NCBI GenBank assembly: GCA_965113315.1
Contig: OZ220364.1
Strand: one strand, 5' to 3'
Origin: Podarcis vaucheri
Lineage: Eukaryota
DNA length: 64,000 bases
Position numbers and translations under genes: made by a program. Below the pieces are notes generated by a model. That model saw only the letters and a list, made by a program, of their open reading frames with translations, searched no databases and was not told where the DNA came from. Below are positions 20,901 to 38,930 of this stretch, piece after piece. How positions within the stretch are numbered: the stretch's first letter is position 1; the number at the start of each line of letters is the position of its first letter.

Positions 20901-21038
20901 ATGATCCCGGTGGCCGAATTCAAGCAGTTCACAGACCAGCAGCCTGCTTTCAAGGTTCTCAAGCCATGGTGGGATGTGTTGGCCGAGTACATCACCATAG
21001 CCATGCTGATGATAGGAGTTTTTGGCTGCACTTTGCAG
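20901..21038 (+). CDS. LRRC8E: LRRC8E coding exon 1 (aa 1-46), volume-regulated anion channel subunit
   Basis: [46 protein letters not shown] matches the LRRC8E N-terminus; acceptor TTTTGGCAG ending 20895, donor CAG|GTGAGT; 138 nt, phase 0. Confidence 0.95.
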
Positions 21039-22219
21039 GTGAGTGCGTATGGGGGGAGCCCACGCAGTGCCTAGATGCCGCCATGGTGTCATAGAATCAG
21101 AGGATTGTAGAGTTGGAAAGGACCCTCGCAATGCAGGCGTCGCAGCTAGAGCATCCGTGAAAGATGGCCGTCCAACGTCTGCTTGAAAACCTCCAAGGAA
21201 GGAGAATTGGAATCATTGGAATCTTGGGGTGATGTTCCACTGCCCGTGGAAGAAGAGGCTCTAAATGTTTGGGGGCAGTCTGGACAAGGGTGGAACTGAC
21301 CCTAGCACAGAAATGGTCAACTTCTACAGCCTGGGGGGTTGGATTCTCTGCAGCCCACCACTTGTAAGGGGTGGCGGCCTAGCACTGTGCAGCCTCAGTA
21401 ACTTAGGCAGGGAGGCTCTGTTCTCCAAACGTTGAAGACCGACTTCTCTCCTACATGGCAGAGATGAGAGATTGAGTATTGAGTTTACTGTATTCATGCA
21501 GCCTTAGTACAGAGAAGAAGGTATGGGAGCCACAACTTTTAAGATTCTATCCCATGTTACAGAAAGGGCATGAAGTATTAGGTGATATATACCAAAGCAG
21601 GCCTGGGAAGGACCTCTGTGCCATGACTTCACCTTCTCTTGCCAATGCTTTATCATAAGACTCCTCAGATCCAAAGAAGCCTACAGAGCGTTAGATCCTT
21701 GGGAAGGAAAGATAAGACATGTCTCATATAACCCCTCATTCTGTAATCAGTATGGAAAACGCAGCCCTATAGCTGACACAGCATAGAAAATGCATGCAGA
21801 CAAGTTATTAGCAGATTTATACAGGGGCAGATTTCCCCTTGGTCCCTTTAGTATTAAGACTAGATTATCAGTTCATTTAAATTAGCTCCATTTTGACTAC
21901 ACATGAAGCAGTATTAGATATTAGACTTTGTCATTTCAGACAACAGTTGGGGGAGGATCCTTTTTTAATAACACGTAGCACAAAACTCCTTAAAAGTGAA
22001 ACCAGCACATCAGAAAGAGCTGTTCTAGACCAGCCCACTCCTTGCTATGCTAGTTTTCTACCTGCAGAGACTTTTTAAAAAACATATGAAGAGGTACAGT
22101 CCATTCAGCCACTTCAAGGCTTTCCTTGTTCATCCCCACCTGATATAAACTGTTGCGTTCTACCACCAGCCTGTTTTCTATCATGTTCCTCTCTTCTCTT
22201 TCCTAACCTGATGTGACAG

Positions 22220-24472
22220 GTGACACAAGATAAGATTATCTGCCTTCCCAACCATGTGCCTGATGGCACAACCTTCACTGGTGCATCTTGTGAAGATTTC
22301 ACGAAGAAGAGAGCCAATGCCTCTGAGCCAATAGGACCCTCTGCCAACCAGCGAATGAATGGATTGAAGAACAACCTAGACCTCCAACAGTACAGCTACA
22401 TCAATCAGATGTGCTATGAGACGGCCCTCCATTGGTATGCCAAATACTTCCCATACCTCGTGGTTATCCACACCCTCATCTTCATGGCGTGCACCTCGTT
22501 CTGGTTCAAGTTTCCTGGGACCAGTTCCAAGATTGAGCATTTTATCTCCATCCTGAGCAAGTGCTTTGACTCGCCCTGGACTACTCGAGCCATCTCTGAA
22601 GTCTCTGGGGATAACCAGGAAAATGCATTCTTAGAGAAGGGGTACCGGAGGAGGAAAAGCAGTGCTCCCAGCGAGACAGCTGAACTCAACCCCCCCGGGG
22701 GATCGGTGTCAGAAAAGAAGGTTTCAGAGTCCTCCCCGGTTAGCCTATTGGACAAGAAGGAAGGGGAGCAGGCCAAGGCTCTCTTTGAAAAGGTGAAGAA
22801 GTTCCGGCTCCACGTTGAAAAAGGAGACATCCTTTACACCATGTATATCCGCCAAACCGTTCTCAAAGTCTTCAAGTTTCTCGTCATCATTGCCTACAAT
22901 GCAGCCTTGGTTTCCAATATCAGCTTCATTGTGCCATGCACTGTCAGGATGGAGGACATGACAGGCTATGACCATTTCTGCTGCAATCACACCAAAGCCC
23001 ACCTCTTCTCCAAACTGGCCATCTGCTACATCTGCTTCCTTGGCATATATGGCATGACGTGTCTCTACACCCTCTACTGGCTGTTTCACCGGCCACTGAA
23101 AGAGTACTCCTTTCAATTTGCACGCAACGAGACAGGCATCAGCGACATTCCTGACGTCAAGAACGACTTTGCTTTCATGCTCCACCTCATTGACCAGTAT
23201 GATTCCCTCTACTCCAAGCGCTTTGCTGTCTTCCTTTCCGAGGTCAGCGAGTTCAGACTCAAGCAGATCAACCTCAGTCATGAGTGGACGGTGGACAAAC
23301 TGCGGCAGAAGCTGCAAACCAACGCGCAAGGCCGGCTGGAGCTCCATCTCTTCATGCTACCAGGGTTGCCTGACACCACCTTTGAGCTGAATGAGCTGCA
23401 GTCCCTGAAGCTGGAGCTCCTCAAAGATGTGACATTCCCACCCTCAGTGACTCAGCTGGCCCAGCTCCAGGAGCTCACACTGATCAACTCTCCCGTCAAG
23501 CTCTCTTTCACCTCTCTTATGTTCTTCCGTGAGCAGCTGAAGGTAATGACTGTGAAGTTTGATGACATCAAAGATATACCACTATGGACCTACAACTTGA
23601 GAGGCTTGGAAGAGCTGCACATCTCAGGACTTTTCAGTCCAGAGATGGGCCGGGCAGGGACTCTGGAGAACCTGCGTGAGCTGAGGAATCTGAAGACCTT
23701 GACTCTGCACAGCAACATCTCAAAACTGCCACCTAGCGTGTCTGACGTTGCCGCCCATCTGCAGAAGCTCAGGATCTACAATGATGGGACTAAGCTAGTG
23801 ACCCTCAACAACCTCAAGAAGCTCTTCTCTGTGCAAGAAGTGGAGCTGATAAACTGCAACCTGGAACGCATCCCCCATGCTGTCTTCAGCCTGGTGAACA
23901 TGCAGCAGTTGGACCTCAAAGATAACCAGCTGCAGTCCATTGCAGAGATCATCAGCTTCCAGCATTGCCGCAAGCTGGTGTGCCTCAAACTTTGGCACAA
24001 CCACATTTCCAGCATTCCTGAACACTTCCGCAAGCTCAAGACCTTAGAGCAGCTTGACCTCAGCCATAACCGCATTGAGGTCCTCCCTTCCCAACTATTC
24101 CAGTGTTCTAGGCTGCACACTTTGGACCTTTCCTATAACAATATCCAGGTCATTCCCCCTGGGATGGGAGTCCTGCAGAGCCTTCAGCATTTTGCCATTT
24201 CTCACAACTCCTTAGAGGCACTGCCAAATGAAATCTTCTTCTGCAAGCAACTCCGGGTTCTCAAAGTGGGACACAACAAACTGCATCGCCTCTCTGACCG
24301 CGTGAGTTGGCTGCCTTCGCTCTCCACGCTAGACTTGAGAGGAAATCCCCTTCAGGCCCTTCCCTTGGAGATTGGCCAGTGCCCAGTGCTCAAACGGAAT
24401 GGCCTGCTGGTGGAGAGCAGTCTTTATGAGGCGTTGCCTATGGAAATTAGGGAGAAAATGGAGGATCAGTGA
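22220..24472 (+). CDS. LRRC8E: LRRC8E coding exon 2 (aa 47-796): TM2-4 and complete LRR domain
   Basis: Acceptor GACAG|GTGACA; LRRC8 motifs [48 protein letters not shown]; many LxxLxLxxNxL repeats; joined CDS 2391 nt = 796 aa; lies upstream of MAP2K7 as in mammals. Confidence 0.95.
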
Positions 24473-24639
24473 TGAGGAGAATGATAAAGGGGACAGGGGT
24501 GTCCTCTCATGTGTTGGCCCCTTTGAGTCCAAGCATGGACTGAATGGGGGAGCTGGCTGGACTTCTATCTTCGGCTGGAACCAAGGAGGGAATGGGAACT
24601 TTTCACCCTAATAAGGGAGCAAAGGAATTGAAAAGACAC

Positions 24640-24645
24640 AATAAA
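24640..24645 (+). other. Candidate proximal polyadenylation signal for LRRC8E (alternative ATTAAA at 25864-25869)
   Basis: AATAAA about 170 nt after the stop codon; usage unknown. Confidence 0.3.
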
Positions 24646-25937
24646 GAGCAAAAGTAGAAAGTGACTTTTAAAAAAATAACCCTGTTTTCTGAATGGATAA
24701 GACCACAGGAATTGTCCATTGGGGCGGGGGCGGAAGCACAGCTACACCTGACCAAATCATCATTATAGCTATTTTTGTACATGTGTTGTGTACTGGTGTA
24801 TCTTTGTGAAATGCCCTGGGGCTTTGCGGGATTGTTCTGTTCAAAACTCCTATCTCTGCTCCCTTCTCCTCATCAATGTGTTCAGCTCGCAGGCCTGTAG
24901 CTTACAAAGCCCATCTTTTGAGCTTATTAGAAAACTTTCTTTTCTGCAGTTTCAAATTCCTATATATCATGGGGTGGGGAATCAGGGACAGGCAACTCTT
25001 CAACAGGGAAATAGCCTAATTCCTTTTACTTCTTTGTTCAAAGAAGGGCTGTGTTCCTTAGCACTGGACAGACAGAGCACAATGCCTTCACATACCACTG
25101 ACTGTAAGGAATCTTCTTATGTTTGTGTGTGTCTGTGTACATATGCATGTATACCTTAATCCCTTCTGGTTTCTGTTTTTGTCACATTCTAATCAGGGTG
25201 ACATTAGTTTATCAGTTCTTCTTGAGTGCTAGAGCTGAACTTTCTGGCTGTTCAGATCTCTTCCCTCTTCAGGCTAGGAGAGCCTAGCACCACAGATCCT
25301 CTTCAGAACTCACTTCCTCTCTCATTACCTTCTCACGTAATTTCAGTGAGCACCACACATGGAAGAGAGGAGGAATCCTGCACTGTGAAAACCCATCCTC
25401 ACTACCACTTATGAAAAGCCACCTTATTTCCCCCTGGAGCCTTTAATCAGTTCTCCACATATTCCAATCCCAGCATAGGTTGAAGTCGCTTTCTCACTCC
25501 TCCTATAAGCACAGACATTCTTTCTACCCATTTTCTGTAATCAAGGCAGGTAAGTGCCTTTTGCTTAGCACATGAAGGGAGATGTGGGACTTCCCAGGTG
25601 GCTTGGGCTTGCTTCTGTTTCATCCCTTTGGGTCTCAGCTCTCTTACGGCCTCTTGAGACGCAAGCAGACTCTTCTGGGCCTGCCGTAACCTGGCCTTCT
25701 CTTCCTGCTTTACCTGATTGCAGAGCACTTTGGGGCATGTAAAAGCCATTGGAAAAGGGACCCTGCTTCCTCAATGGCAAAGCAACTCAAAGCTGGTCTC
25801 AGAATCCTACCTGTTGGCAGCAGACTCCTTCATATCCAGTTAAAGTATGTTTAGAAAAAGTTTATTAAAAATAAGAGAAAGCTGAAATGCATGGCATTAA
25901 GAAACAATAGTGCACACTTTTAGCAGATGCTATGCTA

Positions 25938-25940
<3 letters not shown>

Positions 25941-25981
<41 letters not shown>

Positions 25982-25999
25982 GGGTGTGTGTGTGTGTGT
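25941..25999. repeat. Compound (CT)n/(GT)n microsatellite
   Basis: Direct tandem repeats. Confidence 0.9.
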
Positions 26000-26822
26000 A
26001 ATGTTCCTAACCCCTACTTGTCTTTGCTCATAGAGTTGCTTTGTCCTTAGAAACCTCACAATCTGGTCCGAAATAGTTTAGTTCATATGTCTTCTGCCAG
26101 ATTCAATACACAGAGGTGGTTGGATAATGATTTCACCTTCCATTTGTTGAGAACTAGTTGCTTGAGGGAACTTTCACAATAAGGGAGAGGTTGCAGTAGT
26201 CCCTGGTAATTATTGTTTTGGTTAATGAAGTCCTAAATTCAGAGCCTGCTGAACAACGAAGGCTGAAGTCCTGTGCACACATAACGGGAATAAATCCCAC
26301 TTGCACTTGAGTCAGCATTCATAAGACCAAATAGAAAGGTGGCAAGGAGACAGCCATATCTATTTGCACTCTTACCAGCAGTCCTTGGGACTCAGCTGCT
26401 GAGCCTTGCTTTTGACAGGAGCAAGCTGTGCCCTACACTGGGGCAACCAGGCAACCAGCCAGCCAATGCTTCATACCTGGGAATGGCACAATAGGCCTCA
26501 TTCCTCATGCCCTGGTGGTTGAAGGGGGAGGAGGAGATGGGTGGGAATGTGAAGCAATGGGTGGGAAGGAGAACCTGCTATGTGACTCACTGAGAGAAAC
26601 CAACCAACATAGCTGCATTTTGGGAGTGCTTCTGAGGCCATAAAATTGGAAGAGGCTGTTCTGCAGCAAGGTTGTAAAACAGGCCTGTTGTGCAGGAACA
26701 TGCTTTAGTAGCATGAATAACACTGATGGTGTTAACACTGTGGTGGGTGGCCTGGTGTTTACATGAGCATGCACCAAAGTAATTATTTGGCAGTTCACAC
26801 AGTTCCTGGCAAAATGCATTTA

Positions 26823-27040
26823 CAGTGGTACCTCAGGTTAAGAACTTAATTCGTTTCAGAGGTCCGTTCTTAACCTGAAACTGTTCTTAACCTGAAGCAC
26901 CACTTTAGCTAATGGGGCTTCCCGCTGCCGCCGTGCCACGATTTCTGTTCTCAACCTGAAGCAAAGTTCTTAACTCAAGGTACTATTTCTGGGGTAGCGG
27001 AGTCTGTAACCTGAAGCGTCTTTAACCTGAGGTACCACTG
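26823..27040. mobile_element. Tc1/mariner MITE (same family as 9443-9668)
   Basis: TA TSD; TIR CAGTGGTACCTCAGGTTAA ... TTAACCTGAGGTACCACTG. Confidence 0.9.
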
Positions 27041-27337
27041 TACTTAAAAGACTTAAATAACTTTGGGGGGGGGGGGGTAGAAGAAACGCCAGCAGAATTA
27101 AAACAGATGTAAAACATTGTAAAAGGCCAGAGTCAATGTAAGAGATCTTCAGTTAATTGGGTAGGAGGCGTAACTTAGTGGTAAAGCACATGCAAAAGGC
27201 CACCTCAGTCTCCAGGTGAAGGATAACAGGGGATAGCTAATATTCACCTACTTGAGCCGCTGCTCAGAGTAAACATTACTGAGCTAGATGGACCAAGAGC
27301 CCTACCTGGTATAAGGTAGAATCCTATGTTCCCATGT

Positions 27338-27700
27338 AAAAGGTAAAGGTAAAGGTACCCCTGCCCGAACGGGCCAGTCTTGACAGACTGTGGGGTTTGT
27401 GCGCCCATCTCACATTTATTGGCCGGGGGCCAGCGCTGTCCGGGGACACTTCCGGGTCACGTGGCCAGCGTGACATCGCTGCTCTGGCGAGCCAGAGCCG
27501 CACACGGAACGCCGTTTACCTTCCCGCTGGTAAGCGGTACCTATTTACCTACTTGCACCCGGGGGAGCTTTCGAACTGCTAGGTGGGCAGGCGCTGGGAC
27601 CGAACAGCGGGAGTGCACCCCGCCGCGGGGATTCGAACCGCCGACCTTTCGATCGGCAAGCCCTAGGCGTTGAGGCTTTAGCCCACAGCGCCACCCGCGT
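27338..27700 (-). mobile_element. Sauria SINE, different and CpG-rich subfamily
   Basis: (AAAGGT)n tail, GGATTCGAACC (B box on minus), many intact CpGs. Confidence 0.9.
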
Positions 27701-28802
27701 GTACTTGGTACTAAAAGGATATAAAGTGCCAGCTGGGCTTCCTGGAGAGGACATTCCATAAATGTGGTGCCACCACTGAAAAGTCCCTTTCTCTGATCTC
27801 CCCCCCCCCGTCTAACCTAAATAGGTTGAAACACTTAGAGATGGGCCTCGGAAGATGACCTATGCATTTGAGCAGAGACCATGAGGCTGCAATCCTAACC
27901 CCAGCACCTGGGAGTAAGCCAGGCAAGCGAGAAGCACAGTTCAAGGCCACATTCCAAGGAGACACCTGAGGGCCAATGAAGGGTGTGGCCTCAGGAGGAG
28001 GCGTGGCCTAGGGAGAGGTGTGAAGGGCCTGCATCTCTCCCTCCCTGCCCAGGTCTGAAGTTCCCCAGGGAGGTTCAACTGGTGCCTTCATTATACACCT
28101 TTAGATGCCAAGCAAAAATGTTCCTCTTCAACCAGACCTTGGGCTGATTGACATCTTATACCCCTTTAAAAATTGTGTGTGGGAGGGGGTGAGCGGGGTT
28201 ATTGGTCTGTGGTTTTTTTTGTTCTTGTTTTTATCATGTGCTTTTATATTGTATTTTTAGGTTGTGAACTGCCCTGAGATATGTGGGCAAAGGACAGTAT
28301 ACAAATGTAATAAATTATCGTCTAAGCAGTACACCACTTTAGGTTTCAGGCAAGGAGTTTGGGAAAACACTGCACCGCACCACAGAGGAGTCTGTCAGAA
28401 ATAGTTGGGATTGTCACTATGTACATCCACTGCCTTTGATATGGGCAGTGACTGAAAGGGTCCAGACATGATGGATTAGATGTCGGGCTGGATCATTTGC
28501 TCCAGTAGCTACTTATGCCAGTCTTGGATACCCGACAGATTTATATTCTCTCTTCGATCAGAGGCCTTCAACTGGTGGATTGGGGACTCACTACCAGGTT
28601 GCCTGATCTAAGGTGGGTCACAACAGCAGCACTACCACCATACAAATGTATGGAATGAATGAATGAATGAATGAATGAATAGGTCCCCAAATACTTGTTT
28701 GGATTACATAGGGGTCCTGTGTATGAAACCGCAGAATATTGTTGCAGTTTAAACATTTATGTGCTATGTCACTAGGTTCATTGGCTGTGTGTTGGAGCCT
28801 AA

Positions 28803-28815
28803 TGCCACCTAGTGG
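28803..28815 (-). promoter_or_regulatory. Candidate CTCF site between the two LRRC8 genes
   Basis: TGCCACCTAGTGG reads CCACTAGGTGGCA on minus, a close match to the CTCF core consensus. Confidence 0.45.
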
Positions 28816-30099
28816 TTAAAATTATTCAAGCACCTCAAAGAGCAATCATAAAATGCACTTTTATTTGTGGTGGGTGTTCAAACTCTACTAGTCAAGGCTT
28901 TTCAGGTATAAGGCAAATAGCCGATTCTTCAAACCCCACTGAAGACTCAGCCTACGCACCACTGTGATTTGCTCTCCTATGTGATCAATTAGCTGCAGAC
29001 TTCCTTTTGGAAGGGAAGGTTATACATTTTTAAAGGGAATAAATAAATAGGTGGCCACTTTCTATTCCTAATATGGAATTAAGCCTCCTTACCAGTCTTC
29101 ACAGCATACAGATTTCTGGGATCACAACCAACCACATTGTTCGGCTGAGTCAGGTCTTACAAGACTGTATGTGGATAGAGTGGGTGATTATGTTCCTGTA
29201 TTGCACAAGTGAAAAATAATGCAACTTTAAGGAGAGATTTTGCAAAACTGAATCAAGGAATACAGTACATAAAACCTTGACCAAAATATATTGCATCTGT
29301 GCCAACTCTGACCACACATCAGAAAGGGAGGGACCTACCAGCTGATACATGCAAAAGACATGAGTCAGTCAGGTTTCAGGTCTTGTTATGGGACCTAGAG
29401 AAGCTGAGGGAGCTGAGAAAGAACAGGTGGGTGGTCCAAAACAGGGACAGTAGCTTAGGGTGCAGGCATCACAACAGAGAAGAGTCCCTCAGACTGGGGC
29501 TAAGGCTTTATTGGGCCTAGTGGACAGGGATTGGCCTTTGAGGGTCACATGACTGAATGCTCAGGTAGACCAGTATTACATGTCGTTGAAGCAGAGTTCA
29601 GCCTGCCAAACATGCAGTTAAAGCAGAGTCCTGGTGCTGCAGAGATTAAGACACCAGTCTGCTGGGAGTCCTGGTTTGTGCACACACAGTGGGTGCCATG
29701 TAACAGGCCTCTGCCTCCAGGGAGCTTGCAGTCTACAAGAGCCAGTATGCTGTGATGGCTATCATGTTGGTATTATACCAGGATCTTCAAACTGACCTGT
29801 ATCAACTTGCGTGCCCTTCCCTTTCTCCTGTGTGGCTAGAATTTCCATGTGCGTCACATTCTTCAAAGTTTCAATTAGTCCTTGATTCATTCTGAAAATC
29901 TTTTAGCCTCGTTATTTCAAAGTTGTGTAATGCAGGAACAGAATTCTTGCTCAAGCCACTCCACCCATCCCTGATGACCTTATGGCTGTTATTATCAGCC
30001 TTCCCTACCTCAAAGGGTTGTTATGAAGAGCAAATGAAGGCAGGGAACTATGTTTTGTGGGTGAGGAGTTCTCTAGTGGTTTAGTGGTCTTAGCTTAGC

Positions 30100-30162
30100 C
30101 CCTTCCTTCCTTCCTTCCTTCCTTCCTTCCTTCCTTCCTTCCTTCCTTCCTTCCTTCCTTCC
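30100..30162. repeat. (CTTC)n microsatellite
   Basis: Direct tandem repeat. Confidence 0.95.
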
Positions 30163-32919
30163 CTCCCCCCTCTCTCACATTTTTCCACTGTGAGTTACAG
30201 AAGACAGAATAAGAAGTGTGAGTGTGGGAGTTTGTCACAACTGGTAGCAATCCCTTTGCAAGCAAATGAATTCCGAGCAACGAGTTTTGCTTCCCTCCTC
30301 CTTCCTCCAGTCCTTTCGTCCTGCCTGGAGCTGCCATGGAAACGGAATAAAGCCTCTTGCACTGAGTACAGTGTGGTGTGCAGGCTTAACGCACAAGCAA
30401 AGGAGAGGGTCTGGGAGAGAAAGATCCTTGCAGACGGGAGAGAAAAGAGCAGAGGTTGTGCATGAAGAGTTCTAGAACCGCCTGCAGGTGAGGAATTGAT
30501 GCCAAATGGGATAAGGAAGTCAGAGAGGGGCAGAAGGTTGGCATGTAACCCTTCCAGTGTTATAACCACAGCCAAAAAAATGCTTGTGTCTATGCATGCT
30601 AAAACCACCCTTCTAAATGATATTTAAGGACAGCCTGCTGCAGATCTAGCAACAGTGAAGTGGTTCTGTTTCAAGGCTAAGTGTCTGGGAGTGCATGTTT
30701 TGTTGGTGGATGTTTTAGGGTGCCCCCAAACTGTTGATATTTTGTGGGAGGAATACACACACATACTGGAACTTTAGGTTTGCACAATTAAAGTGGATTG
30801 CAACCCTCTGTCATCCTAGTGTCACAAATCCACTTTAAATAAACAACATTGGACTTTTCGCAGTTTGAAAAGTGATGGGGAAATGCATTCAAAAGTGTGG
30901 GATGAGTGAATTATTATTATTATTATTTATTAAATTTGTATAACACCCTATTCTTGCAGGTCTAAGGGTGGTTCAATGACACGTAAACACCCTGCATGCA
31001 AATAAGGGTAAATGTAAGATAAATACTCTTTGTCATATAACTACCCCATAAACAAATCAGAACAAACGCTCAATGAAGATCAGACATTGACCAACTATTG
31101 TGTAAGCTTATCAGGATCATAGCTGTCAACGTTTTCCTTTTTTTAAGGGAAATTCCCTTATTCCGAATAGCAAGAAAAGGGAAAAGTTGACAGCTATGAT
31201 CAGGATGAATGTTGAATAAACAGGTTGTCTGGAGGAACCCCGAGTATCGTGAACAAACAACAACATTTTCAGCAGCAACAGCCAAAAGGAATTGGAATCT
31301 AAAGCAACAGCTGCTTTCAGAGACACCAGGATTAGATCCTCTCACAAACAACTTTTAGCACAAATGTGCAAATCACTTATTGGTATCTCTGCTTTTCAAC
31401 TTCAGGTAACAGTAATTCTTCCATCTACTCAGAGTAAGATATCATTAAGCCTAGGCCATTTCCCACTTGCCTGATCCACTGTAGGACGTGGAAAACAAAG
31501 ATGGGGAAATGGAAAGTTGCCTAAACGCCACAGAGTAAACCACCCTCTGTACAGCCTTAAGGCATTTTTCCATCTTTCCGCTTTCCACAAAGCGAAGTCT
31601 AGTTATAGGATCTAAGGAGAAACTGTGAGTAAGGAAGTGTTGTTGCTATTTATGACTTGGAGAGCATCTTGGCAGATGGCTATATGAATTATAGTCTTAG
31701 AATTTTTTAAAAAAACACATATTGAATCTTTTTCAAGCCACTCCATCTCATTGCAATTATTCTTATTATTCAATTAGGTATTTATATCCTGCTCTTCTGC
31801 GCCAAAAGCATAATCAAGACAGCATGCAGGATAAAATAATAACAAAAACAAACTAAAATGCAATGTTAAAAACAATAACAAGGAAGCCACAATAGCAGTA
31901 AAAAAAGCAGGGTTATTTTTTTAAAAAAAGTGTCCATAGGTCAGGGGTGGGAAACCTGTGGCTCTCCAGATGTTGTTGCAGACTCCTCAGTGGCAAGGGT
32001 TGATAGGAGCTTGAGGACTCATCTACATTAGTACGGAAAAGGTGTTTTATATGTGTTATAACACTGTGACACCAGATAGCACTGTGGAATTCCGTTTTTA
32101 GCCAACATGCTTTCCCACTATGTTGTTTACAACATGTTTTCCTGAAACACTTTTTTAATGTATCTAGATCCAGCCTAAGACCAGTGACAACTGGAGGGCT
32201 ACAAGTCCTTCCCTGCCCTAGATTATTTATTTTTTTTACATTTGGAATGGCAGTTGCCAACTCAGCATCCACAGATGCCCTGCTGCCCACATTGGTGCCC
32301 CTGGGTGGGGGAGGACAAATTATGAGCTTTCATCTTTTTCTTTTTTTAAAAAAAATAAGGCTCTAGCCTTCCAGGAAAGTTATGAAGCAAAACATACAGG
32401 TACCCTTCTAAGTGATTTTTGCAAGATGGGGGCTGCTGCCTGTCAATGCTTTTAACCAGCGGATGAAGCTGTGATTGATAAATGTGTTGTTTAGACACCA
32501 GGCATTAGGAATCCCTGGGATCCTAAAGAGCTACTGTTTCCCCCTGTCCTTTAGCGCACTTTTCCTGTTTCTGTCTGTCTTATTTATAGTCTTTGGATTC
32601 TCTTTAGTTTGCCCTTCTTTTCCCCGTAGCAGCCAGGATGCATCTTCCCTAAGGTCTCTTAGTGTTTACTAGGGCTTATTCCCAGGTAAGTGAGTGCAGG
32701 ATGGCAGCCTAGACTTTGGTTTATGGTTGACACTCAGGAAACAGGAGGTTCTTGTGTCTTTGGCAGCTGTATGGCAGGCAGAAACTCAACAGGTTAAGGC
32801 AAGCCTTTCCTAGTATGGAAAGCCTCGCCATAACTGTTCTGTCTCTAAGTTTGGGTTATGCCTGACCACTTTGTTCATCAATGACGGCGCTATCAATAGT
32901 GCCACACAATGCCCGCTGT

Positions 32920-33130
32920 ACCAGGAGAGGAGCATTCAGTGTGGCAGCATCAAAACGATGGAACTCCCTCCCAATGTGCATTATGCAAGCGCCTTCTGTT
33001 TTATAATTTCAAACACATTTCTGTTTAACCAAGCCTTCCTTGAAGTGTGACCAGTTCTGTATTTTAGTCATTTATCGCTGAACAGTTTTAATGTTTAACT
33101 TTTTATATTGTTCTGAGTAACTTTGTATTG
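32920..33130 (+). mobile_element. L2-type LINE 3' fragment
   Basis: AGAGCATTCAGTGTGGCAGCA...TGGAACTCCCTCCC (RAFSVAA..WNSLP-like). Confidence 0.55.
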
Positions 33131-33144
33131 CTCACAGTTTAGGG

Positions 33145-33175
<31 letters not shown>

Positions 33176-33266
33176 GCACTAGCTAAATGTGCTAAACATG
33201 CAGACTTTGTTTCAGTGCAATAGCCAAGGATGTTACTCAATTCCCACTTACCATTTGCTTCTAGTG

Positions 33267-34430
33267 ATGTTTAACCTGACAGAAGTGACCTTCCTCGGTG
33301 ACGCCCACGCTCGGTTCCAGACTCTAAAGCCTTGGTGGGATGTCCTGATGGACTACTTGGTAGTAGCGATGCTGATGGTCTCTCTCCTCTCAGGTACTCT
33401 GCTGATTTCTGTTGACCATATGACCTGCTTGCCTCTGAATTACAAGCTAAATGAGACCACAGCAGCTATGCTCAAGCCTGGAGCTATGAACAGTGCCACC
33501 AGTGAAGAGTTTTCTGCTGAGAACAGTGGACGCCCAATCAACCTTGACTACCAGCAGTACCTGTACATAAACCATGTCTGCTATCAGAATGCTTTGCCTT
33601 GGTTCTCCAAGTATTTTCCTTACCTAGCACTTGTCAACTCACTGATTTTAATAGCAAGCAGCAACTTCTGGTTCAGGTACCCTAAGACGTCCTCAAAGAT
33701 CGAACACTTCTTATCCATCCTCATGAAATGCTTCGAGTCACCTTGGACCATCAAGGCCGTCTCTGAAATGGTCTACCAGAATTTCCTAGACCTACCCCAA
33801 ACCACGGATACTAGAGGGTGTCAAGAACAATTTATTTCCCCTTCATCCTCTCCTATCCTTGACTGGAAGGAGAGGGAGCAGGGCCGGGCACTCTTTGAGA
33901 AGATCTGCAGATTCAGGGCACATGCTGAAGGTGCCAGCTTGATTTATATGGTCTACATGGGACAATCAATCTTCAGAGTCGCCAAGATCCTAACTGTGCT
34001 GGGCTACACCTCCAACTGCATAGGAGCCATCTCCTTTGAACATGTTTGCTGGCTGGACACAGAGAACCTCACCGGCTACTCTGTTTTCCTCTGTAACCAC
34101 AGCTTGGCTTTCATTCTGCAGAAGTTGATGGTGACCTACCTGTTCCTGGTATTCCTCTATGGGGTGGTGGGGGCTTACCCACTGTTGTGGCTGCTGCGGC
34201 AGCCGCTGCAGAAGTATTCCTTTAAGCAAATGCGAGAAGACAGTCACTTTCTTGGCATCCCAGATGTCTACAACGACTTTGCTTTCCTCCTGCACATGGC
34301 TGATCAGTGCGACCAGCTATACTCCTGGCGGTTTGCCATCTTCCTCTCAGCCATGAGCAAGAGCTCTTTGCTGGATGTGGGCCTTGAACACAAGGCAAGT
34401 ATTGAAGGGCTGCAGCTGCATGTGCATTGA
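33267..34430 (+). CDS. LRRC8D-like paralogue, 387 aa: four-TM pannexin-like domain with no LRR domain (functional truncated gene or young pseudogene)
   Basis: Acceptor TTTGCTTCTAG ending 33264, then TG-ATG; MFNLTEV...[15 protein letters not shown] (Cys54), NLDYQQY, ALPWFSKYFPYLAL, SSNFWFRYPKT, CFESPWT, AISFEHVC, DFAFLLHM are LRRC8D-type motifs; no stop or frameshift until TGA at 34428-34430. Confidence 0.85.
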   Translation: MFNLTEVTFLGDAHARFQTLKPWWDVLMDYLVVAMLMVSLLSGTLLISVDHMTCLPLNYKLNETTAAMLKPGAMNSATSEEFSAENSGRPINLDYQQYLYINHVCYQNALPWFSKYFPYLALVNSLILIASSNFWFRYPKTSSKIEHFLSILMKCFESPWTIKAVSEMVYQNFLDLPQTTDTRGCQEQFISPSSSPILDWKEREQGRALFEKICRFRAHAEGASLIYMVYMGQSIFRVAKILTVLGYTSNCIGAISFEHVCWLDTENLTGYSVFLCNHSLAFILQKLMVTYLFLVFLYGVVGAYPLLWLLRQPLQKYSFKQMREDSHFLGIPDVYNDFAFLLHMADQCDQLYSWRFAIFLSAMSKSSLLDVGLEHKASIEGLQLHVH

Positions 34431-34640
34431 GACTCAAGGGCATCAGAGAATTAAGGCTTCACAAGGCTGCCAGGCTACCTAGGGCCCTCTTCTGTGAAAT
34501 GGAAGTCCTGAAGCTTGCAAACAGTCCCAGACTAAAGCACCCAGAAAAATAGGTATACTAACCTTTCTTAATCCTCATTGGTCAAGATGGGCCCCACTGA
34601 CCTAGGAAGGCCCACAGTATTCCACATCACATTTCCTGAC
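34431..34640 (+). pseudogene. Frameshifted remnant of the first LRRs of the LRRC8D-like gene
   Basis: Shifted frame 34448-34552 reads ELRLHKAARLPRALFCEMEVLKLANSPRLKHPEK* (compare LRRC8D ELHLFMLSGVPDAVFDLTDLDVLKLELIPEAKIPAK); further shifted pieces GILTFLN and VKMGPT...VFHITFPD (compare SQMTNLQ and AKVEQT...CLHVKFTD). Confidence 0.7.
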
Positions 34641-34751
34641 AGGTCTCCACCAGTATCTCTCTAGCAACTTTGGCAAGATGAAAGATGCACTGTTCAGACC
34701 TGTCCTTGTTGGGCTGGGATTATGAATATGGATTTCATATGGATATGGAAG

Positions 34752-34935
34752 AAGGGGTACAGCTCAGTAGTTAAGCATGGGGTTTGTATGCAAAAGATCC
34801 TGGGTTCAATCGTTGGCATCTCCAGTTAGGGCTAGGAAAGGCTCCTGTCTGAAACCATGGAGAACTGCAGCCGGTCAGTAATACTGATCTAGACAGACCA
34901 AGAGTCTGATCCAGTTTCAGGAGCCTCTGATATTC
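34752..34935 (+). mobile_element. tRNA-derived SINE; related decayed copies at about 27165-27332(+), 10230-10370(-), 7525-7630(+)
   Basis: AGCTCAGTAGTT A box, GGTTCAATC B box, GGCATCTCCAG..AGGGCT.GGAAAG body. Confidence 0.65.
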
Positions 34936-35030
34936 TGATTAACTGAGGGCTGAAGATAAGGCAAATTCACAACTGGATCCTTTAACTTTCTTTTCTATTT
35001 TAATGCAGTACTTTTTATTAGCTGCTCTGC

Positions 35031-35036
35031 AATAAA
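35031..35036 (+). other. Candidate polyadenylation signal of the LRRC8D-like gene
   Basis: AATAAA about 600 nt downstream of the stop, preceded by a T-rich tract. Confidence 0.35.
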
Positions 35037-35093
35037 AACAACAGGTACCTGCATTGCCTGTGAACTTTCCTCCCTGGGGTTAACAACAGTGCG

Positions 35094-35128
<35 letters not shown>

Positions 35129-37129
35129 TGTGTTGGGGGGGAGGGATCAAGGAATTGGTACCAATAATTGGAAAACTTCAATAGAAACCAAAGCCTCTTC
35201 TGTATTTCTGCTTAAAACAGCAACAAAACAACAACAAATAATACACTGACCTGGGAATAAGTCCAATAGGGGCATACTTTTGAGTAAATATGCATAGGAT
35301 TTCTGTAGCATTTATTACATCTGTTTTAGCCCTGAGATATTAACAGAGAAGCAGATTTGAGCTGGCATGATTTTCCTGAGCTATGCTGAAAGTAAACACA
35401 CGAGCACATACAAATTAATGTATAAAACTGTAACATTTTCTCCAAATGATCTTTTCAATGTTTGTTTGTTTGTAAAAAAAGAATTGCAGGACTCTACAGT
35501 TTCAGTTTAAGAGTGTAAGGAGTTGTAGGTAGTGAAATGATCCACTTTCTGAAACCAAAGGAGAATATTAGTCATATGATGGCACAATGGGCCATCAGTG
35601 TCCCTGGCTGTTAGCCAGAAGGTTGGGACGGCTGTGAGCAGGATTCCTGCATTGCGGGAGGTTGGACTAGATGACCCTTGGGGTCCCTTCCAACCGTATA
35701 ATTCTATGATTCTGTTTCCAAGCCGTTCATATGTTAATGAAACAAGTGTGGGTTCAACAAGCCCGTCTGCCAAAACAAAGAAGATATGTCCTCCTGCATC
35801 TCCCTTTCCTGCCTGTCTTACAGGAATGACACTTTAAGGATATATGAAAAATGTGTCAATGAGACACTGACGTAAGAGGTGTTTCTTACAGCAAGAATGA
35901 AAAATCACCATAACCTGGGGAGGCCTTGTAGCCCTGCAGTCAGAAACAATGATTTACAGTACAATCCTATACATGCCTATCCAGAAGTTCTATTGTGGTT
36001 AATGGGGCTTCCTAAAGTAAGTGGATATAGGATTGCAGTCTTCTTAACTGTTAAGCAGATTGACAAAGGGCTAGTCCACACTTTCACTTATGCCATGCAT
36101 AGAAAGCATGGGTCCAAGCAGTTTCCTGCAGATTTCTGCATGACCCACACTTTCAAGGCATGGGTCCAAGCAGTTTCCCCCTTGCCCCACTCCTTTCCAA
36201 TTGAAAATCTGCTCTTTAGCAGCAGGATGAGAGGAAGTGTGGATAAGCTGGGAGAGCGAGCTCACAAAGTAACCTTAGTACTGTAGTCTCTAGTTAAATG
36301 AGACAGCTCTGTGGTGTCCCCAGTTCCAAAAACAATTCAGGACAATGTCCCTTATTTTAAACACAAACAAGGAAGAATGCCAAAAACAGAAAGGAGCAAC
36401 ATAGTGGAACTCAGAAGACAAAAAGTACTGTACTCCCATAGAAATGAAATGGCCTGTTATGGTTTGCATTTTGCTGGAAGAAACCTATATTATTATCAGA
36501 ATGTTCTGGCTGAAGGCAAAACATACTTAACTGTAGCTAAAGTCACACAGGTGATGTTATCTGAATTAGAGCTGACAGACCATGGCAGGAAAGTCAAAGG
36601 ACAACCAGTACGTAAAACTAATTAATGCATCTCCCCCTCCCCCTCCCCCCCGCCAGCATTGCACCTTCCACAGAAAAATTCTAGGAGTCTGTAAGGATTC
36701 AACATTTCCTTCTGATACAATCTGTAAATGTATTTTTATGTAGGTAAGAATCAAGTAGGTAAGGTGTGGGGAACCCATGGTCCTTCTCCACACATTTCTA
36801 GACTACATGTCCTATCATCCTTGATCCTTAGTAATGTCAGCTGATGGTGATGGGAGTTGGAATCCATCATCTGGAGGGTCCGAGGGTTCCCACCCCTGAA
36901 GTAGAAGGCATATATTTAAAATTAAAGATGTGTGTGTCTTAGGATGGAGGCGTGTGCACACGTATATACACATGCAGTTTTCTTCTTAAACCCTAACTTG
37001 ATCACCATCTAAGAGAATGTAATAAAGGCTTGCTTTGCTCTGTACTTTGGTAGCTGTTATCTCATAACATGCTTTCCCATGTACTTCTTCATGCAGCGCA
37101 TAGTTAAACTATGAAACAGGAGGCAGTGA

Positions 37130-37382
37130 TGGACAAAATGTTGGACAGCTTTTGAAGAGGATTAGACAGATTCATGGAGGATGCTGTCAGTGGCTACCAG
37201 CTGTGATGGCTACTAGCTCTGCCTCCACTGCTGGAGACAAAATGCTTCTGAATACCAGCTGCTGGAAGCCACAGGCAGGGAGAGTGCCCTTGTCCTCCTT
37301 GTGAGTTTCCAACAGGCGTCTGGGTGGCCACTGTGAGAACAGGATGTTGGATTAGATGGGCCAGAAGGCTCTTCTTATGTTC
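37130..37382 (+). mobile_element. CR1 LINE 3' end
   Basis: GGATTAGACAGATTCATGGAGGAT...CTGTGAGAACAGGATGTTGGA...CTTCTTATGTTC resembles squamate CR1 3' ends; partial related pieces at about 14870-15030 and 17300-17430. Confidence 0.65.
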
Positions 37383-38089
37383 GCACCACACCCTTAAAAG
37401 TCCACAGTTCACATTTTAGATGGGAAACAGATCCGCAGCAACTCTAAGGAATATACTGTACCGGTAAGCCCAGCTCTTTCGACTCCCAGACCTGTACTCT
37501 GTTACACTGGATGTCCCAGCAAACATTCTATCATGGGTACTCCACAATACCAAGAAATAGACAACCTTATAAAAAACCTAGCAAAATGTGGTTCCCAGCG
37601 ACCTTTCATGAGGTTGTAGCTGGTTCCATTGGTTCCCTATCTGCGCTTCCTAGTTTCCTATTTGATTCAACAGGTCGGACCTAGCAGAAGCCAGTGCGAC
37701 AGCTCCCACTAGTGCAATTCCCTGCAGTGCAATGCATCCTGCTCCGGAGTGTGGGGAGAACCCCCAGAACAGTGCAGGCAGGGGGTTGGGGAGACGCGAG
37801 AAAAGGCGGCATATAAATGCAACAAGTACACAAATTCTAAAGAAGCACAAAGGAAACCCAAGCGCAGGCAGGAAAAAATGCTCTTCCGTATTTGGAGCAG
37901 TTCAGCTCCGGCTGGTCTTCAAGTGTGAGAGGTACGTGCCATAGAATCACAGAACTGTAGAGTTGGACTCAGAGGGTCATCTACTCCAACCCCTGCAGTA
38001 ATATTTTGCTCCCCGCGGAACTTGCACCCAGGACCCTGAGTTTAAGAGCCTCAGGTTCTATTGACTGAGCAGCATCTTCTAACACCCCT

Positions 38090-38930
38090 CCGACCCCGTC
38101 ATGACTCCCGGACATGCTCCCTAGTCCCCATCAAAACTGAGTGGAGATGCACGAATAGGGAACGTCCGAAATATCATTGACGGCCGGGCGGTGCGGATAC
38201 TGAGCTCGGGCAGCGCTTTGGTGCCCTCGCGCATGCGCGAGCAAGGAAAAGCCGCGAGGCAAAACAAGCACAGCGGGCAAAAGCGGAGCCGTGTCTTTGC
38301 GGTGGGCGGAGGAGGAGGACGATAATATGGTGGCCTGGTTGGTCCTTTCGGCGCGTGCGCACTGCGGTGTTTGTGTATTCTGGCTGCGCGGTGGCGGCAG
38401 CGTCGGCGGCTCCGGGGGAGGGGGGGAAGATGGCGGCGTCCTCGCTGGAGCAGAAACTGTCCCGCTTGGAGGCCAAGCTGAAGCAGGAGAACAGGGAGGC
38501 CCGGAGGCGCATCGACCTCAACTTGGACATCAGTCCGGCCCGGACTCGGCCTAGTAAGGGAGGCTTTGAGGGGGGAAACGGGGGCGGCGGCGGCGGCAGG
38601 GGAGGCTCCGCGGCAGGGCCCCCCCCTGCTTGGGCGACTGACACGGGCCCGCCTGGGCAGGAGCCCCGGGGCCGGAGGGATGCGGGGCGGGGATGGGAAG
38701 AGCCGAGCTGCCCCGGAGAGGGGCCGGTAGAGAAAGGTCCTCCCGGAGAAGCGAAGGGGTCGGGAAACCCGGGGCGGGGAAACAAGGGGGCTCTTGTTTA
38801 CCACGGAGCCTGGGGGAGGCGGAGGCCCAAGGCACACCGGGGCCGGGAGAAAGAAGACCGAGGGGAAAGGTAAAGAATCCAGTGGGGAAGGGACTTGGAG
38901 GAAGGCGTGGGCGTGGGGGGCGGGGAAGAG
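38090..38930 (+). promoter_or_regulatory. MAP2K7: MAP2K7 CpG-island promoter with NRF1 palindrome and YY1-like motif
   Basis: TCGCGCATGCGCGA at 38227-38240; AAGATGGCGGC overlapping the start codon; CpG-rich. Confidence 0.8.
38430..38553 (+). CDS. MAP2K7: MAP2K7 (MKK7) exon 1
   Basis: MAASSLEQKLSRLEAKLKQENREARRRIDLNLDISPARTRP; donor CTA|GTAAGG; 124 nt, phase 1. Confidence 0.96.

Follow-up and report, generated by a model that had tools for sequence, protein, structure and literature searches.

A squamate LRRC8D-type gene predicted to encode a channel pore domain without leucine-rich repeats

An LRRC8 pore domain next to LRRC8E

We analysed a 64,000-nucleotide (nt) stretch of the genome of Podarcis vaucheri (the window; contig OZ220364.1 of assembly GCA_965113315.1), in which a gene of the LRRC8 family is located between LRRC8E and MAP2K7. 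Canonical LRRC8 proteins, the subunits of the volume-regulated anion channel (VRAC), possess a C-terminal leucine-rich repeat (LRR) domain of about 15-17 repeats. On the plus strand, an intact open reading frame (ORF) extends from an ATG at 33267 to a TGA at 34428-34430 and comprises 387 codons (33267-34430). The same frame had been picked out by a first-pass annotation made from the letters of the window, and NCBI models of the gene already bear the name 'volume-regulated anion channel subunit LRRC8D-like'; the sequence itself is therefore no new discovery. The 387-residue protein matched the Pfam family PF12534 (Pannexin_like, the transmembrane region of LRRC8) with an E-value of 1.4e-108, covering profile positions 1-346 in two stretches. 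PF12534 was the sole family found at E <= 0.01; the Pfam scan returned no LRR family, and no innexin/pannexin family matched at this threshold. The main-exon ORF of the adjacent LRRC8E (22220-24472), with which the protein shares 40% identity, matched ten Pfam families, among them PF12534, LRR_8, LRR_4 and LRR_14.

The closest solved structures were LRRC8D chains (E 4e-118), followed by LRRC8A (1e-101) and LRRC8C (1e-93), and the truncated chains 9ezc and 9t5p_E were among the matches. Alignment with solved LRRC8D began at Met1 and reached residue 386, the counterpart of LRRC8D residue 465, where the last cytosolic helix ends ahead of the repeats. An AlphaFold2 (AF2) monomer model computed from a 52-row alignment reached a predicted local distance difference test (pLDDT) score of 56.7, and the order of its secondary-structure elements fits an LRRC8 pore domain. 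The PF12534 match, the LRRC8D alignment over residues 1-386 and the modelled helices agree with the earlier proposal that the frame encodes a complete LRRC8 N-terminus, four hydrophobic segments and the helices that follow the fourth transmembrane segment (TM4). Likewise, the four extracellular cysteines and three sequons listed in the first-pass annotation were all recovered. Cys54, Cys105, Cys261 and Cys276 are invariant across 52 aligned LRRC8D and D-like proteins and are predicted to form the two disulfide pairs of the extracellular subdomain, while the sequons correspond to NET62, NLT267 and NHS277. The most conserved stretch of the protein is found after TM2 (residues 134-167; invariant columns F134-E167).

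At the position of the extracellular constriction the protein carries Tyr95, where LRRC8D has a phenylalanine. It resembles LRRC8D in the fold elements of the pore domain, in the single cysteine of the CLP motif and in the aromatic nature of the constriction residue. LRRC8D, however, is a separate ancient paralogue with LRRs, and alignment gaps indicate that the first extracellular and the intracellular loops are much shorter in the squamate protein. Judged from its sequence, the protein is an LRRC8 by descent; by architecture it is not a canonical one, because it matches no LRR family, its frame stops at the domain boundary and only an out-of-frame vestige follows.

Orthologues and loss of the LRR domain

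A length-restricted protein search yielded squamate LRR-less relatives of 359-432 residues. Podarcis raffonei contributed a protein with 97% identity, and the same search gave proteins from Rhineura, Pogona, Elgaria, Phrynocephalus, Sceloporus, Anolis, Hemicordylus, Sphaerodactylus, Lerista, Python and Varanus (partial), as well as Logan contigs. Cluster look-ups added P. muralis, P. lilfordi, Lacerta agilis, Zootoca, Eublepharis, Protobothrops and two Crotalus species; the nearest protein, from P. muralis, differs at 6 amino acids. Two ENA-derived fragments with an LRRC8A N-terminus of mammalian, possibly human, type were excluded from the comparisons. Geckos, skinks, lacertids, an amphisbaenian, iguanians, anguimorphs and snakes were thus represented, with intact pore domains in all of them. 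The first-pass annotation had considered that close relatives might show stops or frameshifts within the transmembrane region, but the squamate models are intact. All squamate proteins terminate within about 10-45 residues after the same helix, and the short tails comprise both stretches homologous to the first residues behind this helix and lineage-specific ones: gecko proteins end about 10 residues before the lacertid end, and several other lineages have unrelated tails.

Searches with lungfish and sea-turtle queries revealed full-length LRRC8D-like proteins of about 770-836 residues, which occur beside ordinary LRRC8D in the same species. They were found in turtles (Dermochelys, Emys, Chrysemys, Gopherus, Emydura and Carettochelys; about 772-792 residues), in a salamander (axolotl), caecilians, lungfish, coelacanth, bichir and cartilaginous fishes. 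These orthologous proteins show 52-59% identity to the squamate protein over the pore domain and share with it the four cysteines and the tyrosine at the constriction. They carry a C-terminal LRR domain according to precomputed Pfam families, whereas the squamate protein does not. Protein-database searches, which cover annotated proteins rather than genomes, returned no member from birds, crocodilians, tuatara, mammals or frogs; an archosaur orthologue would have outranked the amphibian matches in the search with the sea-turtle query. Nor did they return any squamate D-like protein with LRRs, the only long model being a fusion with LRRC8E. Among sea turtles, Caretta and Lepidochelys were represented by LRR-less-looking models of 430-459 residues, with Caretta having in addition a model of 728 residues with a shortened LRR region. 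The Eretmochelys model was flagged 'LOW QUALITY PROTEIN', and the other turtles had clean models. Possible explanations are erosion of the D-like gene in cheloniids and differences in annotation.

A maximum-likelihood tree was computed from the pore-domain columns of 52 rows (LG+C20; support given as ultrafast bootstrap / Shimodaira-Hasegawa-like approximate likelihood ratio test, SH-aLRT). LRRC8D proper formed a separate clade (100/100). All squamate LRR-less proteins fell into one clade (100/100), sister to the full-length turtle proteins (100/97). Squamates and turtles were placed within a tetrapod D-like group, with the D-like proteins of sharks branching earlier, and a separate tree with LRRC8B/C/E outgroups agreed. 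The label LRRC8D-like, which the first-pass annotation had used, can be refined accordingly: the tree places the gene as the squamate orthologue of a second, ancient LRRC8D ohnologue, which lies in tandem after LRRC8E. The squamate part of the gene tree matches the accepted species tree. Since gene tree and species tree run in parallel, a single loss of the LRR domain follows, later than the split from turtles and earlier than the radiation of crown squamates including geckos.

How the domain was lost is suggested by the sequence behind the stop codon. A tblastn search with seven full-length LRRC8 proteins against 24500-38400 detected no LRR-coding sequence between the ORF and exon 1 of MAP2K7. 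The sole colinear LRR piece beyond the pore domain was located directly past the stop but in another frame (34439-34549). It matched best to residues 432-470 of the Rhinatrema D-like protein (46% identity, E 0.009), followed by residues 438-476 of the Protopterus protein (E 0.021), and Ambystoma, Latimeria and Podarcis LRRC8D queries hit the same place. In a related lacertid for which a transcriptome contig was available (organism A; the contig is taken to be RNA on account of its splice and of how large its set is), this piece has suffered a 1-nt deletion (at 34465) and 3 substitutions and therefore behaves as expected of non-coding DNA. Because an out-of-frame vestige of the first LRR follows colinearly right after the stop, loss of the domain can be traced to a frameshift or stop codon where pore and LRRs meet, with subsequent decay and deletion. 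About 110 nt of the first repeat persist in what is now 3' untranslated region (UTR), and the remainder was deleted or has decayed. The earlier statement that the frame stops exactly at the LRR boundary, with no LRR-encoding ORF before MAP2K7, thus agrees with the tblastn result and is extended by the vestige.

The proteins of P. muralis, P. raffonei, Lacerta agilis and Zootoca vivipara are all 387 residues long and align to the end without any length difference; the few substitutions lie upstream of the tail, except for H385R in Lacerta. An assembly error at the stop, a concern voiced in the first-pass annotation, is excluded because these four other lacertid genomes place the stop at the same position.

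Constraint, transcript and genomic surroundings

Selection was judged from protein-level site statistics and from nucleotide differences to the single contig of organism A. In a substitution-only simulation, a neutrally evolving frame of 1161 nt stayed free of stops with P 0.022 at K = 0.1, 0.004 at K = 0.15 and 0.0008 at K = 0.2. The neutral divergence of squamates from root to tip falls in this range or above it, and survival of a neutral frame would be reduced further by indels. The frame is open in every squamate lineage sampled. Per-site variability in 20 squamate proteins correlated with that in 32 full-length proteins (Spearman 0.48, p 1e-23): 66 of the 93 sites invariant in the full-length proteins were invariant in squamates too, compared with 81 of 294 other sites. 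Over the pore domain, the lizard protein shares 57.8% identity with its caecilian orthologue and the full-length turtle protein 58.3%. Both are equally diverged, and loss of the LRR domain therefore did not release the pore half.

At the nucleotide level, the ORF differed from organism A by 13 substitutions in 1164 nt (7 nonsynonymous, 6 synonymous) and by no indel. This corresponds to a ratio of nonsynonymous to synonymous differences per site (pN/pS) of 0.33 (binomial p 0.047 against a site ratio of 905:256). The 652 nt of 3'UTR showed 19 substitutions and 4 indels, so that ORF and UTR differed significantly (Fisher p 0.008; nonsynonymous sites against UTR, p 0.002). The dN/dS comparison that had been suggested for the transmembrane region has thus an answer on the scale of a close relative, where the ORF evolves more slowly than its own 3'UTR. 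Taken together, these data indicate that the gene is live, protein-coding and kept by selection as a pore-domain-only LRRC8. Within the UTR, organism A has insertions of 27 and 6 nt and a deletion of 7 nt between 34641 and 34742.

Squamates have also fixed seven changes at sites that are at least 90% conserved in the full-length proteins (H124N, T168M, E174L, A206G, E316K, Y348C and K354W). Most of them are located in cytosolic helices, and the set as a whole supplies obvious candidates for an adaptation to the missing LRR domain, in particular the three changes of the intracellular subdomain (E316K, Y348C and K354W).

The gene is transcribed and yields a spliced mRNA. A single 1996-nt contig of organism A (depth 27.8) covers 30381-30485 and 33263-35082, with two letters, AG, that fit either side of the joint. 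The stretch removed begins with GT (30488) and ends with AG (33264), as in a GT-AG intron. The splice acceptor proposed in the first-pass annotation (AG at 33263-33264) is thus used in this contig, which also provides the transcript joined at 33265 that had been named as a check. The contig is unspliced from the coding sequence (CDS) to just beyond the polyadenylation signal, and its match to the window ends 46 nt after the AATAAA. The whole CDS and its stop lie in the last exon of the transcript, so the argument that the mRNA should escape nonsense-mediated decay (NMD), made earlier from the sole coding exon, holds.

Two stranded raw RNA-seq runs from another species covered both the ORF and 30200-30599 at 1-3x. 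Nearly all first mates mapped to the minus strand in both runs, which for the usual library type means RNA from the plus strand. Words of the ORF were present in 14 small contig sets (39-136 Mb) from eight lacertid organisms and seven studies, as well as in genome-sized sets; 13 of the 14 contained about half of the ORF's words each. The size of these sets fits transcriptome assemblies.

Further observations concern the 5' part of the transcription unit. One run contained stranded plus-strand reads at 1.4-1.6x over 29200-29799, upstream of the leader exon, which could stem from a further 5' exon, from a precursor or from transcription running on from LRRC8E. The spliced leader (30467-30487 joined to 33265-33273) includes an upstream ORF of 11 codons whose stop, TAA at 33271-33273, overlaps the main ATG in a different frame and which could reduce translation from that ATG. 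Very high-copy dispersed repeats occupy 31000-31200 and 31800-32200 of the intron, where contig depths in a genome run add up to as much as 276,150, and the same repeats were abundant in RNA reads of both strands. A (GT)n microsatellite is present at 33146-33172, some 90 nt ahead of the splice acceptor used by the coding exon. A CpG-rich patch (27330-27700, within about 27250-28000) was considered as a promoter and rejected, as it represents a transfer RNA-derived repeat resembling a short interspersed element that scores as a CpG island.

The positions of all features are compiled in Table 1. In Crotalus horridus, a gene model fuses LRRC8E (residues 47-793) to the LRR-less protein (residues 818-1209), and the tandem order of the two genes is thus shared with snakes. 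The intron in the 5' leader and the conserved synteny argue against a retrocopy. The first 46 codons of LRRC8E, up to the end of TM1, reside on a separate exon followed by an intron of about 1.2 kb and the main exon. The LRR-less gene has no intron at this place; NCBI models a 336-residue isoform of it that starts at Met52, just past the equivalent position. The tandem of LRRC8E and the D-like gene mirrors the LRRC8C/LRRC8D neighbourhood. According to a zebrafish paper, lrrc8c adjoins lrrc8db, and human LRRC8 B, C and D lie together.

Table 1. Features of the LRR-less LRRC8 gene and its neighbours in the window.
Feature	Position	Strand	Basis
Upstream neighbour LRRC8E, full length with LRRs; coding exons about 20901-21038 and 22220-24472	20901..24472	+	ORFs, Pfam
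Non-coding 5' exon; donor CAG/GTGAGG, GT at 30488-30489; upstream limit not fixed (contig ends at 30381)	30381..30487	+	Organism A contig; stranded reads over 30200-30599
Intron, GT..AG, 2777 nt, with high-copy repeats	30488..33264	+	Skipped by organism A contig
Last exon: whole CDS and 3'UTR of about 650 nt	33265..35082	+	One contig piece at depth 27.8; stranded reads at 1-3x
CDS, 387 codons and TGA; LRRC8 pore domain without LRR	33267..34430	+	ORF, Pfam, structure matches, orthologues
TM1, about residues 23-47	33333..33407	+	AF2 model helix; aligned with LRRC8D
TM2, about residues 112-132	33600..33662	+	AF2 model; alignment
TM3, about residues 232-254 (approximate limits)	33960..34028	+	C-terminal part of AF2 helix 200-254
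TM4, about residues 279-311	34101..34199	+	AF2 model
Cytosolic helices after TM4 (intracellular subdomain), residues 336-387	34272..34427	+	AF2 model and alignment
Out-of-frame vestige of first LRR, about 37 codons, now 3'UTR	34439..34549	+	tblastn with five full-length queries, best E 0.009
AATAAA polyadenylation signal	35031..35036	+	Sequence; contig match to window stops at 35082
Downstream neighbour MAP2K7, start of coding exon 1 (Met at about 38430), in CpG island	38430..38540	+	ORF translation starts with MAP2K7 N-terminus

Predicted assembly, rival readings and implications

The explanation that we consider moderately probable, and the best overall, is that a live LRR-less gene of the LRRC8D type provides squamates with a protein that co-assembles with full-length LRRC8 subunits. 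The sequences show that the second LRRC8D paralogue lost its LRR domain in the stem squamate, when a change where pore and LRRs meet broke the frame. It has since been kept through the radiation of crown squamates with its pore helix, four transmembrane segments, extracellular subdomain and complete intracellular helical subdomain. The LRR-less subunit most likely joins LRRC8A and its partners via the pore domain, and the resulting VRAC-type hexamers would carry fewer LRR domains. Packing of the LRRs, through which cell swelling acts on gating, would be altered, and the subunit itself would contribute a wide aromatic constriction of the LRRC8D type, lined by Tyr95.

Pannexins offer an architectural parallel, being large-pore subunits with four transmembrane segments, cytosolic termini and no LRR domain. 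Abascal and Zardoya are said to have recognised the LRRC8 pore domain as a remote homologue of pannexins in 2012. In the case described here the resemblance is one of architecture only, the squamate sequence being LRRC8 by descent.

Human LRRC8 variants provide the closest functional comparison. The pore and LRR domains of LRRC8 proteins fold independently and can each be expressed without the other, and the pore domains of LRRC8A, LRRC8C and LRRC8D also oligomerise by themselves (PMC11729881, PMC13586329). In LRRC8C L400Ifs, which underlies TIMES syndrome, Leu400 is changed and a stop follows seven residues on; the LRR-less product escapes NMD and assembles, and together with LRRC8A it forms strongly constitutively active channels that give rise to a dominant multisystem disorder (PMC11729881). 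Truncation t379, which is 21 residues shorter than the truncation at residue 400, did not assemble. Truncation t419, which ends at residue 418 and is 19 residues longer, assembled well but produced very low currents with little response to swelling (PMC11729881). To place the squamate protein on this scale, we counted residues from the RFA(V/I)FLS motif, using the primers and text of PMC11729881. Ile358 corresponds to LRRC8C Val390 and Leu368 to Leu400, the lacertid end is equivalent to LRRC8C residue 419, and the fixed change K354W is located four residues before the Val390 equivalent. The human truncations resemble the squamate protein in lacking LRRs, in being cut at the same boundary and in having their stop in the last exon, so that NMD is escaped. 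They differ from it in being a de novo pathogenic allele or engineered constructs of paralogue C, whereas the squamate gene is fixed, old and selected. A further natural truncation that removes most of the LRR domain is the ébouriffé allele of mouse Lrrc8a, described in PMC11729881 as truncated after residue 442 and as a recessive hypomorph with impaired trafficking. Unlike the squamate gene, it is a laboratory mutation of the obligatory subunit and not a conserved gene. The human truncation data allow for activation as well as for damping of the channel by an LRR-less subunit.

Several points weigh against co-assembly into functional channels. Translation, trafficking, assembly and current are all predictions for the squamate protein, and its nearest human counterpart, t419, is functionally compromised. 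The AF2 monomer that we used as a guide is of low confidence, as its pLDDT of 56.7 suggests. Constraint is moderate, with a pN/pS of about 0.3 derived from 13 differences to one contig, and raw RNA depth was low (1-3x from about 1.9 Gb per run). Among sauropsids the whole D-like lineage, with or without LRRs, evolves about 15 times faster than LRRC8D proper, the VRAC subunit that confers permeability to osmolytes, amino acids and drugs. The lineage of the window carries four derived amino-acid changes (N75, I129, Q178 and S234), and the seven changes fixed in squamates could mean that the canonical function was lost rather than adapted.

A bolder version holds that an LRR-less VRAC subunit has been fixed and kept for about 200 million years and that, with LRRC8A or by itself, it forms a channel whose opening is uncoupled from LRR gating. 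It would act as a constitutive or differently gated, pannexin-like osmolyte pore of the LRRC8D type, tamed by E316K, Y348C and K354W. We regard this version as tentative and give it a low probability.

Unlikely, in our estimation, is a non-conducting decoy that soaks up LRRC8A and its partners or poisons hexamers and thereby lowers VRAC activity. This idea, the dominant-negative role already raised in the first-pass annotation, overlaps with the co-assembly model but predicts loss of current only. It draws on t419, which ends one residue before the equivalent of the lacertid end, assembles robustly and hardly conducts or responds to swelling (PMC11729881), and on the poor trafficking of the hypomorphic ébouriffé protein (PMC11729881). 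A pure decoy, however, would need the assembly interface alone, but conservation extends to the N-terminus that lines the pore, to the region of the constriction and to the cysteines of the disulfides.

A shade less probable still is a function without LRRC8A, in which the protein would form a homomeric, pannexin-like large-pore channel, possibly intracellular, or use the fold in another role. The pore domains of LRRC8C and LRRC8D oligomerise by themselves (introduction of PMC13586245; PMC11729881), the architecture is that of pannexins, and the seven clade-specific changes together with a long stem branch (0.57) allow for a change of function. On the other hand, the source considered here (PMC13586245) describes subunits other than LRRC8A as needing LRRC8A and as studied in heteromers with it, and the site-wise constraint on the squamate protein is still that of canonical LRRC8 pore domains.

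That the gene is a transcribed unitary pseudogene, its open frame a leftover without protein function, seems very unlikely to us. The LRR remnant past the stop had first suggested a decaying pseudogene, and the frame-breaking origin, the fast evolution relative to LRRC8D and the low depth in the two RNA runs would suit it. We dropped this reading in view of the orthologues, the RNA and the substitution pattern: the frame is open in all sampled squamate lineages, although substitutions alone would let a neutral frame survive in < 1% of cases per lineage, the ORF shows 0 indels against 4 in the adjacent UTR at a pN/pS of 0.33, and conservation follows the pattern of functional paralogues. Least probable of all, a full-length isoform with LRR exons elsewhere, which would make the LRR-less form one isoform or an annotation artefact, is hinted at by the longer non-homologous tails of Anolis (432 residues), Hemicordylus (416) and Elgaria (408) but conflicts with the tblastn search, which found no LRR-like coding sequence from the stop to MAP2K7, with the unspliced run of the contig to just beyond the polyadenylation signal and with the protein databases, where the LRRC8E fusion model is the only squamate D-like entry with LRRs.

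In the searchable literature, which includes few subscription papers, we found no description of a natural LRR-less LRRC8 paralogue, although earlier notice is possible, and no sixth tetrapod LRRC8 lineage; squamate LRRC8 was limited there to a mention as a marker gene. The gene documents what the sequences indicate to be a sixth vertebrate LRRC8 lineage, a second LRRC8D ohnologue beside LRRC8E. Rearrangement of the LRRs is treated in current structural work as the step that opens VRAC, and how their movement is passed on to the pore has yet to be settled (PMC13586329). The family owes its name to the LRR domains, whose role the squamate gene puts to a natural test. A natural subunit without LRRs, which selection has maintained in an order with over ten thousand species, lends itself directly to work on the gating question and shows which residues of the pore domain and intracellular subdomain change once the LRR domain is gone. 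It also matters for the interpretation of human LRRC8 variants truncated where pore and LRRs meet. If the pore is indeed uncoupled from LRR gating, squamates would keep a subunit of the kind responsible for a severe dominant gain-of-function disorder in humans, and an LRRC8 protein would have reverted to a pannexin-like mode.

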